NCBI GenBank assembly: GCA_009859145.1
Contig: VRVR01000042.1
Span: 62,001-126,000 of the forward strand
Reading direction: 5' to 3'
From: Andalucia godoyi And28
Taxonomy: Eukaryota; Protista; Jakobida
Length of the DNA stretch: 64,000 nt
Of this stretch, positions 1,610 to 62,334 are shown piece by piece. The notes beneath the pieces are model-generated. The model was not told the origin of the DNA. It searched no databases and worked only from the letters and a program-made list of their open reading frames with translations. The stretch's first letter is position 1; every line of letters begins with the position of its first letter. The translations under genes and the position numbers were made by a program.

Positions 1610-2135
1610 AAGAATGATCCTGGAATCTGACGACAGACTCGCATCGAAAACTGGCCCCCCAGCGGTTAACGTAAGCAGCATGACTGCGTCCTGTTGCCAA
1701 AGTTTGAGACATCTAGAATGGTCTTGAAAGAAGGACGGCAAATCAACAACAAGACGGCTCGTCAGATGGTGGTGACGTTGAGGGGGGGTGGTGGGTCACT
1801 TCCAATTCCGAAAAAAAGCCTGTTTCATAAGGCGACGGAATACGCGAGCCGCGAGATCCACGTTGTGAGCGAGGAGTACAACTCCAGAACATGTCGTTTT
1901 GGTGGCGCTATTCGTGAGCGGCTAGGCGGAAAACAAAGTGCTCCGATGCCCGGCATGTCCGGCCCGTCTGGATCGAGATTGAAAGGATGCGCGCAAAAAG
2001 TTTCCATTTGAAGAACGCTTCGGCGAACTGGGGCCTTCTCCCCTTCCTGAATTAAATTCACATTCCGTTCGGATGCAAGACTGAATATGGATTGGTCAGT
2101 GCTTAGTCGTTGGGCCCGACGTGGACGATTGCCAT
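1610..2135 (+). mobile_element. Degenerate Fanzor2/TnpB-like element relic A (3' part plus putative omegaRNA/right end)
   Basis: Frameshifted translation NLTTDSHRKLA / HDCVLLPKFETSRMVLKEGRQINNKTARQM...LFHKATEYASREIHVVSEEYNSRTC..G...LGG / NKVLRCPACPARLDRD*KDAR, with TGA at 1980 in place of Trp. The 3' noncoding segment is shared with three other loci. Confidence 0.85.
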
Positions 2136-2163
2136 TTCAGAGTTCAAAAAAGACAGCTACAAA

Positions 2164-2195
<32 letters not shown>

Positions 2196-2872
2196 GAAGA
2201 AGAAGACACAAGGGTACGAGACACGCAAACCAATGCTCCTATTAAAAAAACTAGTAGCCGCACAGCCAAGAAAGCAGTCGCAAACCGTACTTCTTCGCTT
2301 CTAAGCTTCAAGTCGAGGACCAAGGATGCGGAGAAGCTTACGATTTCCAGCGATCCATGAAACCCTACCAAGGAACTCAGCTGCTTCAGAGACGCTTAGG
2401 CTGATGGGCCTGCGGAGAAAGACATCTTTGCAGACGGCGCTGCCCCCCGTACTTGACAAGCACGATTGGCATAGGATGTTATACTTGATAAGCGGCGAAC
2501 AGCTTCTCGGAGTATTTTACAGTCTCGGATGCGATTCGCATCTTCTTCAGTGGACGGGGGTGCGGAGTGGTCGGCACAAGAGCAGGCGTGTTGCAGGATC
2601 TGCTCGGACGGCAATATGCGTTTGAACATCCGTGTTAGCAGAGTGAAAATGCCGCGTCGCTGTTATGTGCCGTGGTAGCCGCGCACTGGAGATATCGCAT
2701 CGGCCACAAAGCGGTTCTACCAAGTCGAAACGGATATTTAAACAATCAACACTCGTGCTCCTGCGATTTTCTTTCTTTCTTTTTTCCACACTCTCTGCAT
2801 CTCTCTTCACAACGCAAGAAACAAACAAACCAGCAAACGATCTTTGTCGAGCCGCATTCCAAACTTCCAGCA

Positions 2873-11514: not shown

Positions 11515-11829
11515 CGATTCTCCGTGTGCGTATTGGAGAGTACAAAAAGGAAAGGGAGATATATATATATATATAAATGATAAACTACAAATTAAAAATG
11601 AAAATAATGAATTTATTATATATTTTTTTAATAACAACACACAGACTTTGTGCCGCAGTGCATTTGATGCAAGAACAAATCCTTTTTTGGAAGACCGCTG
11701 ATTTATAACACGTCATTGTCATGCATACGGAAGGAAGCACACACATAAACAGACACGATCGATACTGGCCGACACCAGCACGTTTGTTTTCACTGGGAAC
11801 TCGTGCTTACGCACGCTCGGCCAAAATTC

Positions 11830-12146
11830 AGCCTGCGACACCAGTTCGAGACATCTCAGATGGTACTCAAACATCATCGTCGAATCCGCTGCAAGACTGC
11901 CAATCCCAGCAACGTTTGTTCCGTAAGACGACCGAGTATCGCGAGCGGCGGAAGCAAAATGTTTGCATGTCCCGCGTGTAGCTCGCACATTGATCGAGAT
12001 TGGGAACGGAGCGCGGAGCATTTATATGAAGAACGCCGTGAGGCGTGTTAAGATCTATCCCCTTCCCTGGCAACGGGGTGCAAGGATTGAATATGCATGT
12101 CCATTCGTAGATATGCATGTTCAGTGCATAATGTAGGCGTTGCAAG
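11830..12146 (+). mobile_element. Degenerate, internally deleted Fanzor2/TnpB-like relic C
   Basis: FETSQMVLKHHRRIRCKTA / QQRLFRKTTEYR / GGSKMFACPACSSHIDRDW / NGARSIYMKNA, followed by the shared 3' segment ending aatgtaggcgttgcaag. Confidence 0.85.
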
Positions 12147-13991: not shown

Positions 13992-14619
13992 CGCTGCGTC
14001 TTGTAATATCTCGGTGTCTTTTCACGTTGATTTTCACTGTCTCGCCTTTTGTCCGTCTTATAGTGGTGGTGATGCTGGTCTTTTGCAGCGTCTGCGTGTC
14101 TTTTGTTTCAATTGCAGAGAGTATTTGTTTGTGCGTTTTTCTTTGGCCTCACCTCGGCTTACAGTTTCTTTTAAAATTCGTGCATTGTAGCGCATATATA
14201 TATATAAATGTGTGTGTGTGTGTGTGTCCATTACCATCGTTTTCCCACAGCATCAATCGTTTTGCAAATTTCATGCACAGAGGAGTAGTTGAAAAGAAGT
14301 GAGAAGGTAAATCACCGAGAACACGCACAAAAGAAGCAAATGAATTCTGGCAAAAAAAAATGCCGTTGCCACTTATTGCGATATGATGAAGCGATCTAAA
14401 GCGCACGCAAACAGAACCACTGCCACGCGCCATGCGCATGCGTCTGCTATCTTGACAGCTCCGTCACACGATGCCCGATTCGTTTCGCCCCATTTTGATC
14501 ACTAAATCCCTATACACACGCCCCCGCGTTGCATTCTCACACAGCGACGCTCTTTTCTTATTTTTATTGTCCATGCAATGCACCATGTAAGTCACGCCCG
14601 GAACGCTGCGCAAGACCCG

Positions 14620-15032
14620 TGACAATCTCCACCGCCACCTTCCAGCGCTGGGCCGCCGCCAGGAAAGATCGCCAAGGCGACAACTGCGCGGCTGCGCTAC
14701 TCGACGAGACGCGCGAATTCGCGGGGCGGCAGGTGTCGATTGTGACTTGTGACGGAGGAGTACACGTCTAAAGCGTGCGGCCGTTGCGGGGGGAAATGCA
14801 TCGCAAGGTGTATGGCAAGGTGTGTTTTGTTGCCCATCGTGCAAATGCACGGTCGACCGCGATTGGAACGGCGCGCGCAACATCTACATCTATCTTAGGA
14901 ACGTCTCTCATGCCGAGGGGCGTGTTGGGGCCTACCCCCTTCCCAATCATGATATGCATGTTGGGTTGCATCATTGATTATGGGGAGTGATTAGCGATGA
15001 TTATCCGTGTTTAGCGTACAGTGTAGGCGTTC
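14620..15032 (+). mobile_element. Degenerate Fanzor2/TnpB-like relic B
   Basis: LLDETREFAGRQVSIV / VTEEYTSKACGRCG / FCCPSCKCTVDRDWNGARNIYI, with a perfect RuvC-III motif, followed by the shared 3' segment ending agtgtaggcgttc. Confidence 0.9.
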
Positions 15033-15060
15033 TACTGAAAAAAAATCCCGTCAGATGCAT

Positions 15061-16005
15061 TCATCTGGATGTAGCAGAGCAATTAACACTTGTTGTGGTT
15101 ACGTAATCCCCCCAGTTATAATCATGCTCGCGCACGATGCCCTTGTTCGTAACCAACATTTTGTTGGCAGACCATTGCAGCAAGGAACTAGGGCCGTGAA
15201 ATGACTCGCGACCACTTTCTGCCACGATCTTCCAGTCTTGCATATCAAGTAAAAAGACAGAGCCACGGAATATGTCGCAAACGCCAAGCAACTCCGTGCC
15301 GTCGGGGGTCGACCAGAATGCAATATCGTCGAACATGGTTTCCTCCAAATGGAACACCTCAGATGCTGCCGTTGCTCTTCCAGACGCAGGATCAACGTCC
15401 AATCTCACAATTTTTCCAATGTCTGTGGCAAACAGCTTTCCATCTTGGTATTTCAGACCATTCGGATGCATAACCATGGGTTTGGCTGCAGCTTGTTCAA
15501 CAAGCGAGACGTTGCCAGTCTCATCAAGAGTTACAACTAGGACTTGACCCCCCGAAATCAAAGAGTCGTACTGAGAGTCGGCAATCCAAAGCCGACTGAG
15601 CCCGTCTGTCGCAACTCCGTTCGGCAGTGACACCGATTTTCCAAACGTATGAATTTTCTGAAAAGAAGGAAGTCTCCCAGAGGCAATGACGCTGTCCACA
15701 TCATGCTCAATCGATACATACAAGTCGCTTTCTGAAACTGCATACAGGCGAGACTGGATGAAGGACATTCCCAGCATGTACGTGTTCTCATCGAGCAATG
15801 GAATTTGCGGCTGACCTGTCGGAATGTAATACAGGTTGTCTCCGCCCGTAACGAACAGGTTTTTGCGCGGAGACAAGATTGAATTTTCAGCATCGTACAG
15901 CTTCTCTGCAATTTTCACAGTGTCGGAAAACGAACATGCAGCCTCCGCGAATGAAGCAGCAATGAGGAAAAAACAGGCGACAGCATATAAAGTCGAGGCT
16001 ACCAT
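15061..16005 (-). CDS. Secreted six-bladed beta-propeller (SMP-30/gluconolactonase/NHL-like)
   Basis: Signal peptide; repeated PNGVATDG..RLWIADS, PNGLKYQDGKLFATD, FDDIAF, GPSSL blades. Confidence 0.75.
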   Translation of the reverse strand: MVASTLYAVACFFLIAASFAEAACSFSDTVKIAEKLYDAENSILSPRKNLFVTGGDNLYYIPTGQPQIPLLDENTYMLGMSFIQSRLYAVSESDLYVSIEHDVDSVIASGRLPSFQKIHTFGKSVSLPNGVATDGLSRLWIADSQYDSLISGGQVLVVTLDETGNVSLVEQAAAKPMVMHPNGLKYQDGKLFATDIGKIVRLDVDPASGRATAASEVFHLEETMFDDIAFWSTPDGTELLGVCDIFRGSVFLLDMQDWKIVAESGRESFHGPSSLLQWSANKMLVTNKGIVREHDYNWGDYVTTTSVNCSATSR

Positions 16006-58925: not shown

Positions 58926-59245
58926 CTTGCGAGCCTGTATTGTACACCAGCCGTGGCGAATCATTGCTAACCAATCCATGCTGAGTCATGCATCCTGAAC
59001 CGAATGCGAATTCAATTCAGAAGGGGATGCGGCCCCAATGTGTCGCAGCGTTCTTCAGATAGATATTACACGCATCTTTCCAATCTCTCGATCCAGATGC
59101 GGCCGGACATGACGATCCCTGACCCCCGCCTGACCCACGAACCCCGTGATTTCCCAGACGTGGCGCAGACGACTCGCAGCGAGTCGTTAAATAAAATGTG
59201 TCCCCCGTGACGTCCATGAATCACGCAAACCTGGCATCGAGACTC
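58926..59245 (-). mobile_element. Degenerate Fanzor2/TnpB-like relic D
   Basis: Minus strand: GGGQG..SCPA / LDR / DWKDACNIYLKNAA, then ttggggccgcatccccttctgaattgaattcgcattcggttcaggatgcatgact...gtgtacaatacaggctcgcaag, close to relic A. Confidence 0.8.
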
Positions 59246-59460
59246 GCCGTCGTTGACAACGGGACTATTTGCCTGCTGTAATTTGCGTGTGCGACGGCCG
59301 TTGCAGGACTCAATCTTTCTTTTTCGTTCTTCATCATCTTTCGGTTTTCCATTGTTTCACATTTTCATTTGCTGCTGCTGTTGTTGTTGTTGTTGTTGTT
59401 GTTGTTGTCAATAGCCGCATATAGTTACACTTGGAAAAAAGCGGAATTCCGAAAAGAACA

Positions 59461-62334
59461 ATGGCTTATTACTCTGACGATCCAAGGGTTTCCGCCTTTG
59501 AGCCTCTTCCAGCACCGTGGTCCGCGACGAATAATCACAATCATAATTACAATATCAATAATGATCATCTTTATAATAATGATGATAATGATAATGGCGA
59601 TGATGATGCTGCTGCTGCTGTTGTTGTTAACGAAGGTCGTGATGATGATGCGGACTGGAATCGATTGCTGCGAGATTCCATGACCATTCGCGTTCCTGCC
59701 CACACGCTGTCTCCGTCGTCGTTCCAGGTGCAGCAATTCAAAAAGATCGTCGCAAGTGCACAGAGAGAGATTCCTTCGTTGCTGCAGAAAAGGACTACCG
59801 AGGGCGCGTCTCCGTTTTCACCGAACAGCAGACACGGCGGCATTCGACACGGTGAAACTGCGATTAACAAGCAACGAGCTGTGATGAACTCGGAAAGACG
59901 GAAGCATATGGAAAAGGCAGAGAAGAACTCAAAAGATAGACGAACGAGAATTATGGAGTCGACTTCGTTGCATGGGCTCTATCATCACCCGCTTCCAAAG
60001 TTTTATGAATCCAGACCAAGACCAAATGTTGCGCATCAGTACACCGCAGACGAGTTTCTTAGACGCGTTTCATCGGATAAACGCGACTCTCCGAATTCAA
60101 GTACGCGGTCACCATCATCTGCTGCTCCCTCGAGGGAGATTATCGAACCGGTGGACCAAAAAAGTGGAACAGAAACAGAAACAGAAGAAGAATTGCATGA
60201 AATGAGTACCAAGCTGATGTTCGTCACTCCGGACAAGACTCTGCCGCCGCCTCCAATGCCTCCTGCGCCTCCTTCGTCTGCTTCTTCACAAGATGCCTCT
60301 ACATCGTCGTCTAGCCCCCGAGCGGGTGGTCGAGTCATGCGTCGTGCCTCCGTGTACTCCTTGTTCTCTCCTCGAAGCGCACTTGCCAGTCCTGGAAGCC
60401 AGACGCTTCCTCCGCCGCCTTTGCACCCAGTCGAGAATCCAGCTACCGATGCCTCGTCGCAACGTTCTGCAGTGTCTCCTGTTGCAGTCCGAACTTTCCG
60501 AAATAACGATACACGATCCGATGATGCTGCGCTGGTGTCGTCATCTCACTCGGATCAGGGAAACGTTGCATCCTCCAATGTCAAGGAGGAGCCGCTCGGG
60601 CCGGTCTCCCCTGTTCTGCCGGTTCCAACGCGAGCCGCTCCATTGCCCCCACCGGCGGTTCCCGTGCACGATGCACATTCCTCCTCGACCCATCCGGCTG
60701 TTGCATCTTTTGCAAAGCCCACAGAACAGCTCACAGAGCAGCCCGCAGAGCAGCCCGCAGAGAAGCCTGCAGAGAAGCCTGCAGAACAGGTCACAGAGCA
60801 GCCCGCTGAGAAGCCTGCAGAGAAGCCTGCAGAGAAGCCTGCAGAGAAGCCTGCAGAGAAGCCTGCAGAGAAGCCCGCAGAGAAGCCTGCAGAGAAGCCT
60901 GCAGAGAAGCCTGCAGAGAAGCCTGCAGAGAAGCCTGCAGAGAAGCCCGCAGAACAGCCCGTGGTTCGTTCTCCAATTGCTGTGGATTCCGGTTTTATGT
61001 CAGCTCGAACGGGAAGTGAAGGCCCACTTTCCATGCAAATGGTATTGCCAGCAACCCAGAATGTCGTCATTGCGAGTTCACCACCCATGTCTCCCATGAT
61101 TTTATCTGGTCCCTCTTCTCCGTCGAGTTCGCTTGCTTCTCCTCGCTCTTCAGATGCTGCAGACATTCCCACCGCACATTTGAATCTTGCGGACACGCAG
61201 CCGAGTCTTTCCAGCGACGCCTCCGAGAAGGTGGCAGATTTCCCAGATCATGGGGCATCCGAGAGCAACCGTAACCACATTGGCGCATCACCAAACATCC
61301 CGTCCGTAGACATCGATCCTTTTTTACCGCCCGATCAGCTTGACAGCATAGCTTCCTACTCGCCCTTGGCATCGCCTGTGTCGACACCGACAGCAGTGCG
61401 GTCTTCATCTCCGGAAGTCGAAAGCACGGCTGTTGTCCAGACTACTTCATTGCAAGAGTGTGATTCCATACTTTCAAAAGAATCGACGACGATGACAAAT
61501 GGACGTGCTGCGTCTCCTTCTCGTCCTCTTCCTTGTCCTTCTTCTCCTTCTGCTTCTGCTTCTTTGACACAGTCTGGATCTCATTTCGCAGTGCCGTCTC
61601 CTTTGACTGTTCCCGTTTCTGTTTCCGAGGATTCCGAACTTCTTGTCCAACACGCTCCGTTGTTGCCACACACTGTATCCTCGTTGCTGCCCCCGCCGCC
61701 CATGGTGCCGTCTGTTGCCGAGGATGCTTCAACTCTTGCTCCAGCTCCAGCTCCAGCTCCAGCTGCAGCTGCAGCTGCAAGAACAACTCATGCTTCTGCT
61801 TCCTCCTCCTCCTCATCATCATCATCAGCCTCCGCCCCTGTCGAACCGTCAAACGATGTTCTGAGCGAGGTTGACATGTCGAAGTTGTCTGCCAAGGACA
61901 GAGTGCGTCTCCGACTCGAGCAACGAAGAAGAAATCGCACGGACACAGTGTTTGTGGAGGAGTTCAAGATTGAACAGTCAACAGGAACTGCTGCCATCTC
62001 CAATCCAGCAGACACGACGCCGTCCTCCACGGATAACCGATCCTCTGCATCCCGCTTGGCGACGATTACGACGGCAACGGCTCCTGTGAACGGTTCGGAT
62101 GTTGTCGACCCTGCAGAACTGAAGCGTCAAGAATTGCGACAGCGAATTCGCGATCGAGTGTCTTCCAACGTTCCTGCAGCGCCTACAGATCGGTCTGAAA
62201 CACCTCCGCGGTCTCCAAGATCAGTCTCGTTTCACTCTCCCGAGTATGTTGTTTCTCCGGCAGAAACTACACGCCGTGGCTCTCCGCTCTCTGATCGACA
62301 CATTTCTTCACCTGTCTATACGAGCACTGATTGA
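59461..62334 (+). CDS. Pro/Ser-rich low-complexity protein with PAEK tetrapeptide array
   Basis: 957-codon ORF; polyproline stretches; basic helical patches near both ends. Confidence 0.7.
60718..60960 (+). repeat. Coding 12-bp minisatellite encoding about 20 PAEK/PAEQ/xTEQ units
   Basis: Unit gcagagaagcct, including 12 consecutive PAEK units at 60802-60945. Confidence 0.95.

Follow-up and report, generated by a model that had tools for sequence, protein, structure and literature searches.

A short segment at positions 14924-15031 of the DNA analysed here, a 64,000-nucleotide stretch of the genome of the jakobid Andalucia godoyi (hereafter the window), overlaps the broken end of a Fanzor-type nuclease gene and resembles the tails of three other such remnants. 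An earlier note on this DNA had proposed that the segment is the scaffold of an omegaRNA, shared by four Fanzor relics that could still make guide RNAs even though the nuclease is dead. The locus raises two questions: what kind of element the segment belongs to, and whether it may still have a function.

Four Fanzor2 relics and the right end of the element

The window is gene-dense, with a G+C content of about 49%, and EukProt holds exact entries for six of its ten long ORFs. ARAGORN detected no tRNA gene in the 64 kb and a search of the whole window gave no Rfam match at the gathering threshold, the omegaRNA-like sequence belonging to a family without an Rfam entry. The A. godoyi genome is about 20 Mb long with very short spacers, and its assembly left out subtelomeric scaffolds described as 'transposon/viral-like' (PMC7050145); a literature search combining Fanzor and Andalucia found nothing.

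We searched the window by tblastn with L001, the closest near-intact relative, which comes from a Logan sequencing run and has HTH_OrfB_IS605 and TNB domains, and we also compared a family profile with the six-frame translation. Both searches gave exactly four TnpB/Fanzor C-terminal relics, the number claimed earlier: A (~1624-2133), C (~11842-12141) and B (~14573-15031) on the plus strand and D (~59220-58931) on the minus strand. Their conceptual translations match PF07282, the Cas12f1-like TNB domain. The coding remnant of B (14573-14977, plus strand; PF07282 58 bits, and a profile match) has a broken frame and an internal deletion, and the region of the RuvC-I Asp is gone; RuvC-II (EEYTSKACGRCG) and the Zn ribbon with RuvC-III (FCCPSCKCTVDRDWNGARNI) can still be read. 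That of A (1624-2045, plus strand; tblastn, PF07282 32.6 bits, profile 64 bits) is frame-broken and spans residues ~14-148 of the C-terminal half. In C (11842-12067, plus strand; tblastn and profile) a large internal deletion took RuvC-II, and the short remnant of D (59020-59220, minus strand; tblastn, profile 13.4 bits) is limited to the Zn ribbon and RuvC-III. All four copies thus carry frameshifts, stop codons and deletions, the RuvC-I region is gone from every one of them, and RuvC-II is also gone from C and D. By tblastn and the profile search of the six-frame translation, we detected neither an intact nuclease ORF in the window nor the N-terminal half of Fanzor2 at any of the four relics, and the profile search found no TnpA remnant in the window. 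The 3' half and the RNA gene are kept in all four relics, an asymmetry for which random deletion is not an obvious predictor.

The surroundings of the relics also show some peculiarities. The spacers holding B, C and D measure about 625-1,070 nt, several-fold above the 217-nt mean reported for the A. godoyi genome. Microsatellites (window 2160-2205, 11555-11575, 59360-59420 and 59560-59640) adjoin three relics, with (GAA)n directly past the end of A, (TA)n upstream of C, and (AAC)n/(CAG)n together with AT-rich triplet runs beside D. Next to copy D, the protein encoded by the long ORF 59431-62334 is of low complexity and contains PAEK(P/Q) repeated in tandem, (AEKPAEKP)n at window 61100-61400.

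A paralogue of copy B was found in EukProt, protein P0012 (ANDGO_08534), with 84% identity over the aligned part. This protein joins a fragment up to and including RuvC-I (LDPGVRTFATGY...) straight to the Zn ribbon and RuvC-III, and then translates the region of the first two stem-loops (SL1 and SL2) of the RNA gene as coding sequence (...RVRGLAPFSIMLCMLLGCSIDYG; compare window 14573-14985). Annotated as a 'hypothetical protein' of A. godoyi, ANDGO_08534 is a gene model placed on a paralogous Fanzor2 relic, probably an annotation artefact.

With a profile built from a few protein matches we collected 160 related loci, from metagenomes and giant-virus contigs. Among solved structures, the mimivirus Fanzor2 (9b0l, 'TnpB-like protein L79') is the best match to the family protein (E=1.9e-13). 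Two of the loci, L008 and L018, are insertions of one 2,054-bp element; they are 99.6% identical and diverge directly past TGTAGGCGT, so this motif marks the right end of the element, and the earlier claim that copies end at the terminal motif holds. Upstream of the nuclease gene, this element carries a gene with a MerR-like HTH and a Resolvase domain (TnpA), which makes it an element of IS607 type. An IS200/IS605 right-end DNA hairpin, the site of a Y1 TnpA, was considered and rejected, the only transposase in the complete relative being a serine recombinase. The element begins with ACGG... and ends with ...TAGGCGT, and B and C retain ...TAGGCGT. By analogy with L008/L018, the right end of copy B (...GUAGGCGU) would lie at 15029-15030 (plus strand), where identity with the flanks of the other copies is at background. 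Past the terminal motif the flanks of the four copies do differ immediately, as had been noted, identity dropping to a background of 22-42%. With the element boundary at the terminal motif, any guide would be flank-derived; in copy B the would-be guide, if an RNA were made with the known reRNA layout, is 15031-15050 (plus strand), and this flank heads toward the 3' end of a convergent gene (15061-16005, minus strand).

Two features of the L018 surroundings were also noted. A Tc1/mariner-type transposase ORF (L018 143-1102) adjoins its IS607-type Fanzor2 element, in keeping with a eukaryotic host and with surroundings rich in repeats. The flanks of L015 are the same as those of L018 on either side, so that these loci represent one insertion in related genomes, or lie within a larger repeat.

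RNA structure and covariation in related loci

In many of the 160 relatives, an intact ORF is followed by a GGGRNC...CCC hairpin, then by 60-170 nt and by ...UUUAAUGUAGGCG. The hairpin GGGGCCUACCCC is SL1, and in intact relatives its loop pairs with the terminal GUAGGC, which gives a pseudoknot around two or three variable hairpins. The first motif had been described as a sequence that follows the RuvC-III codons; this is correct, but the motif is more than that, because base pairing of the SL1 loop GCCUAC with the terminal GUAGGC makes the first and last motifs the two strands of a single helix.

Covariation was tested on ten relatives simply aligned by MAFFT, without any window sequence. In this alignment, 94.4% of the cells of SL1 and the pseudoknot are paired, against 76.6 ± 2.7% in shuffles (none of 500 as high), and slid registers pair only 39-61%. 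Changes on both sides were observed in six of the nine pairs, that is in four of six in the pseudoknot and two of three in SL1. Among 20 distinct model-aligned sequences, the pseudoknot helix alone is 94.2% paired with 32 double-sided changes. Its covariants include GCCUAG/CUAGGC (L112), GCCUGG/CCAGGC (L003, L009), GCUACA/UGUAGC (L024, L132), GCUACC/GGUAGC (L025), GCCUUU/AAAGGC (L020), ACCUUU/AAAGGU (L059) and CUUACA/UGUAAG (L016), and the SL1 stem also covaries (GGG/CCC, GAG/CUC, GUG/CAC). The tails of the relatives fold with a negative z in 16 of 16 cases (-1.0 to -7.5 against shuffles), and for ten of these 16 the minimum-energy fold closes on the pseudoknot helix around two or three hairpins.

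A covariance model located 24 relatives with the same layout, each directly 3' of the ORF. The long-tailed L002, L028 and L047 and the register-shifted L024, L025, viral L117, L128 and L132 were dropped from the seed of this model, because MAFFT misaligned the anchors when long-tailed or register-shifted relatives were included; inspected by eye, the dropped relatives keep compensated pairing (GCUACA/UGUAGC, GCUACC/GGUAGC). A hand-written scan for a hairpin with a complementary 6-mer downstream was uninformative, with 108 loci against 104.6 expected from shuffles.

Two further observations were made on these relatives. A second motif, AUAGGUUUAA, stands just upstream of the terminal GUAGGCG in L008 (2170-2192), L012 (875-899) and L015 (2389-2411); it can pair with the SL1 loop too (ACCUA/UAGGU), so alternative pairing partners are possible. 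In the metagenomic loci L012 (~796-830) and L024 (~1345-1380), the reading frame continues beyond an in-frame TAG into a conserved tail (...GAYSL and ...GATPL), which could be due to a recent nonsense mutation, to stop-codon read-through or to a host with a reassigned TAG.

The architecture can be compared with that of characterized guide RNAs. The reRNAs of IS607 TnpB and of Fanzor2 have three stem-loops and a pseudoknot from the SL1 apical loop to about 5 nt beside the guide (Yoon et al. 2023, PMC10711439); in ISXfa1 the pseudoknot is required for activity, and the IS607 crossover takes place at GG dinucleotides, with the right-flanking nucleotide forming part of the scaffold (PMC10711439). 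In the cryo-EM structure of the mimivirus ApmFz2, the 5' region pairs with positions -4 to 0 in a pseudoknot, of which the pairs G(-192):C(-2) and C(-191):G(-3) are read by the protein (PMC11832414).

The segment belongs to this known Fanzor2/IS607 kind of omegaRNA (reRNA), an assignment that holds for copy B as well as for the family. Like the reRNAs of IS607 TnpB and Fanzor2, it is specified by the 3' end of the nuclease gene, where it overlaps the last part of the ORF, it combines about three stem-loops with a pseudoknot from the SL1 loop to the last nucleotides before the guide, and it shares with these systems the GG in the right end, a guide derived from the flank and, in relatives, a serine-recombinase TnpA. 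As in ApmFz2, G:C and C:G pseudoknot pairs stand at about -2 and -3 from the end of the scaffold, and the pairing register would fit that of ApmFz2 (GC...GGCGU) if the scaffold ends at ...GGCGU. The scaffold is shorter here, about 105 nt from SL1 to the end compared with about 150 nt in ISXfa1 and 205 nt in ApmFz2, and, unlike the IS607 TnpB and Fanzor2 systems, the elements of the window have no TnpA and no N-terminal half, their frames are broken, and one scaffold of the four is intact.

The omegaRNA of ISDra2 TnpB (IS200/IS605) also has a guide-adjacent pseudoknot core and overlaps both the 3' end of tnpB and the right end. The ISDra2 family, however, uses a Y1 (HUH) transposase and single-stranded DNA hairpins, whereas the relatives studied here have a serine recombinase, and the ISDra2 scaffold ends exactly at the transposon boundary while the conserved sequence here runs 2-3 nt past the GG. 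Fanzor1 omegaRNAs (SpuFz1 and the Fanzor1s of insect viruses) likewise serve a eukaryotic TnpB-derived nuclease, are encoded 3' and are broadly three-stemmed, but they have no pseudoknot and contain TIR/TSD sequence in the scaffold; the strongly covarying pseudoknot shows that the RNA is not of the Fanzor1 type.

By analogy, the RNA would work as those of ISXfa1 and ApmFz2 do. In working relatives, the guide RNA of the TnpB-like RNA-guided nuclease Fanzor2 starts inside the last codons of the nuclease gene, the loop of SL1 (GGG-GCCUAC-CCC) pairs with GUAGGC two bases from the end of the element in the pseudoknot that encloses the two or three variable hairpins, and the guide would be transcribed from the host flank just past ...GUAGGCGU.

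State of the four copies and the question of function

We then examined how much of this RNA is left in A. godoyi. The motif strings reported earlier are all present where they had been placed. The TGGGGCC...CCCC motif starts at 2029 in A, at 14926 in B and at 59037 (minus strand) in D, and its counterpart in C is degraded to aagatctatcccc at 12050. TGCA...TGA(A/T)TATG is found in A, B and C, and D has TCAGCATG at this place. For the terminal motif, the window has only two matches at no more than one mismatch, a perfect one in C (ATGTAGGCGTT, 12131-12141) and one with a single mismatch in B (15021-15031); in D the motif reads ATACAGGCTC, with two core mismatches, and in A it is barely recognisable (GACGATTGCC). 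The 19-mer TTGGGGCCTACCCCCTTCC occurs once in the window, with none expected by chance. In all four copies the module begins in the last codons past RuvC-III, in agreement with the published Fanzor2/IS607 layout of an RNA that overlaps the end of the ORF, and it stops where the homology between copies stops.

A covariance model built from relatives only, R1, was run over the whole window with filters off. Copy B was matched end to end (14924-15031, plus strand) with 38.7 bits and E=2.6e-7. Its scaffold, apparently intact from this match and from folding, has the SL1 stem at 14927-14929 with 14936-14938, the 5' strand of the pseudoknot (GCCUAC) at 14930-14935 and its 3' strand (GUAGGC) at 15023-15028, all six pairs being formed. 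By folding and inspection, SL2 (CCCAA/UUGGG) pairs 14942-14946 with 14961-14965 and a 12-bp SL3 occupies 14969-14999; UGCA stands at 14967-14970. This match, together with the covariation, the insertion boundary of L008/L018 and the published architecture, bears out the earlier reading of the segment as omegaRNA (reRNA) scaffold and right end, by homology with an element of Fanzor2/IS607 type.

The other three tails are decayed. Copy C (12047-12141, plus strand) gave an R1 match at the expected coordinates, but with a score no better than noise (9.7 bits, E=3.6). SL1 has lost its 5' arm (GGGG to AAGA), the pseudoknot is weakened to five pairs of which two are G-U (UCUAU/GUAGG), and SL2, a 16-bp SL3 and the intact terminal ATGTAGGCGTT are kept, with the end of the element at about 12140. 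Neither A (2027-2133, plus strand) nor D (58931-59038, minus strand) was reported by R1 at E<=10, and R1 found no extra copy in the window. By inspection, A keeps SL1 (GGGG/CCCC) and SL2 (CUGAA/UUCGG), its terminal motif is degraded to GAUUGCC and its pseudoknot is lost, with four of six pairs left, non-contiguous. In D, SL1 and SL2 are kept, the terminal motif is ACAGGCU and three of the six pseudoknot pairs are left. The claim that the structure is shared by the four copies is therefore true of B, which retains SL1 and the pseudoknot, marginal for C, and wrong for A and D as far as the pseudoknot is concerned.

RNAalifold on the four tails showed that the SL2 stem is kept in every copy with some compensatory change (CCUGA/UUCGG in A, CCCAA/UUGGG in B, CCCUG/CGGGG in C, CUGAA/UUCAG in D). 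On the other hand, the compensatory outer stem suggested earlier (attca/tgaat in A, aatca/tgatt in B) did not stand, since the 5' halves fall in non-homologous columns and C and D lose the pairing. As single sequences, the tails are not clearly more stable than their shuffles (z = +1.2, +0.06, -2.1 and -1.1 for A, B, C and D). At the position of SL3, copy C has a near-perfect 16-bp hairpin (12086-12125, UUGAAUAUGCAUGUCC...GAUAUGCAUGUUCAG), far longer than the SL3 of the others, and this hairpin is the sole reason why C outfolds its shuffles.

Could these loci still make guide RNAs, as was suggested? Pairwise identity between copies is 37-74% in the body of the tail, 55-80% in the dead Zn-ribbon/RuvC-III coding part and 22-42% in the flanks, and the state of each tail tracks that of the adjacent coding remnant, both being well preserved in B, intermediate in C and poor in D and in the 3' part of A. 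The tails are thus no better conserved than the dead coding sequence, and with no intact nuclease in the window the suggestion is not supported; four copies only give rough decay rates. As the tails decay alongside the dead coding sequence, neutral relics with no present function are the likeliest state, and we infer that they are now inert. Altogether, the four loci are very probably the decayed right-hand ends of IS607-type Fanzor2 transposons, and the segment the remnant of a guide-RNA gene, surviving as neutral debris. Two observations sit less well with this conclusion: the scaffold of B is fully intact beside a shattered ORF, which could mean selection and not youth, and the 3' half is kept in all four relics with no N-terminal or TnpA fragment.

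The main alternative is that at least copy B is a working guide-RNA gene, transcribed and processed to a scaffold with its flank-derived guide and used in trans by an intact Fanzor2 encoded elsewhere or exapted as a regulatory or antisense RNA against its convergent neighbour. Copy B alone in the window appears to have the whole scaffold: it matches the relatives-only model from end to end, with a perfect 6-bp pseudoknot and SL1 to SL3, and the RNA-coding end is the part retained in all relics. A near-intact close relative, L001, exists in a Logan sequencing run, and, since subtelomeric scaffolds rich in transposons were omitted from the assembly, intact Fanzor2 copies could be acting in trans from there. 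Against this, each of C, A and D lacks SL1 or the pseudoknot, the pseudoknot being necessary for the activity of ISXfa1 (PMC10711439), and the preservation of the tails follows that of a dead ORF. The presumed guides of A to D have no second site with fewer than three mismatches in the window. Moreover, no EukProt protein is among the best 120 of 1,493 family-profile matches, which is weak evidence given that it covers these 120 matches and that the annotation was made after repeat masking, on an assembly lacking some scaffolds.

Bacterial TldR proteins, nuclease-dead TnpB-like RNA-guided repressors, offer a precedent for a guide RNA that is useful past the loss of the nuclease. TldR genes retain an intact and conserved protein ORF from which the catalytic residues alone are lost; here, by contrast, the ORFs are shattered by frameshifts and deletions, and no protein partner is encoded in cis. 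We consider a working copy B unlikely. Somewhat less likely still is the specific case in which copy B (14924-15031) is a functional orphan guide-RNA gene beside a dead nuclease gene, its scaffold being kept because the RNA is loaded in trans by intact Fanzor2 copies located in the unassembled subtelomeric repeats, or its RNA having been exapted as an antisense or regulatory RNA that reads into the 3' end of the 15061-16005 gene. Were this the case, guide RNAs would have outlived their nuclease in a eukaryote.

Level of the constraint and significance for the family

The conservation might not act on RNA at all, the first motif being GAYPLP codons and the last a DNA site of the transposase at the right end. 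Indeed, the first motif does encode G-A-Y-P-L-P in B, P0001 and L002, and the terminal motif, which falls on the boundary of the element, includes the GG that an IS607 crossover site should have. However, GGGGCCTACCCCC, which is translated G-A-Y-P in B, P0001 and L002, is read W-G-L-P-P in L028 and G-P-T-P-P in L047, and in L012, L020, L024 and L059 it lies past the stop codon. The same nucleotides in three reading frames or past the stop indicate that the constraint acts on nucleotides and not on protein. In addition, the two motifs covary across about 100 nt (for example GCCUAG/CUAGGC and ACCUUU/AAAGGU), which a peptide and a protein-binding DNA site would not predict. The non-RNA explanation is thus largely refuted and we consider it very improbable.

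The homology of the strictly non-coding tails was tested against 500 dinucleotide shuffles. The pair A-D gave z=18.7 with no shuffle as good, and these two tails are 78% identical over 153 nt (BLAST E=5e-26). A-C and B-C were each equalled by one shuffle of 500 and B-D by 11, whereas A-B (37) and C-D (79) are not significant alone. We conclude that the tails of the four copies, to judge by their sequences, are homologous but far diverged. An nhmmer search with a profile of the four tails gave weak matches only, which provided the first lead to L059 and L047; exact 16-mer scans (TGGGGCCTACCCCCTT), with matches in viruses and in a bacterial and archaeal genome collection, gave apparently only chance matches, and no viral match among them fitted the RNA model. 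Chance, or low-complexity hairpins in AT/GC-balanced spacers, as the source of the similarity can be dismissed: although the single-sequence folds of A and B are no better than shuffles and two tail pairs are not significant alone, it is refuted by the A-D match, by the shuffle results for A-C and B-C and by the independent model on B, and the distance from the RuvC-III codons to the motifs is as expected in all four copies.

These results place decayed IS607-type Fanzor2 elements in the compact genome of the jakobid Andalucia godoyi, and at least one annotated 'hypothetical protein' of this organism (ANDGO_08534) is a gene model on such a relic. Within the window these are ordinary transposon debris, and the remaining interest lies in a possible expression of the one intact scaffold, B. 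For the family, the results provide a covariation-backed model of a Fanzor2-clade guide RNA, with SL1, a loop-to-3'-end pseudoknot, variable SL2 and SL3 and the end ...GUAGGCGU. Giant viruses and metagenomes of soil and water commonly contain the Fanzor2 clade modelled here, and the model could help to locate the guide RNAs and the element boundaries of compact nucleases.
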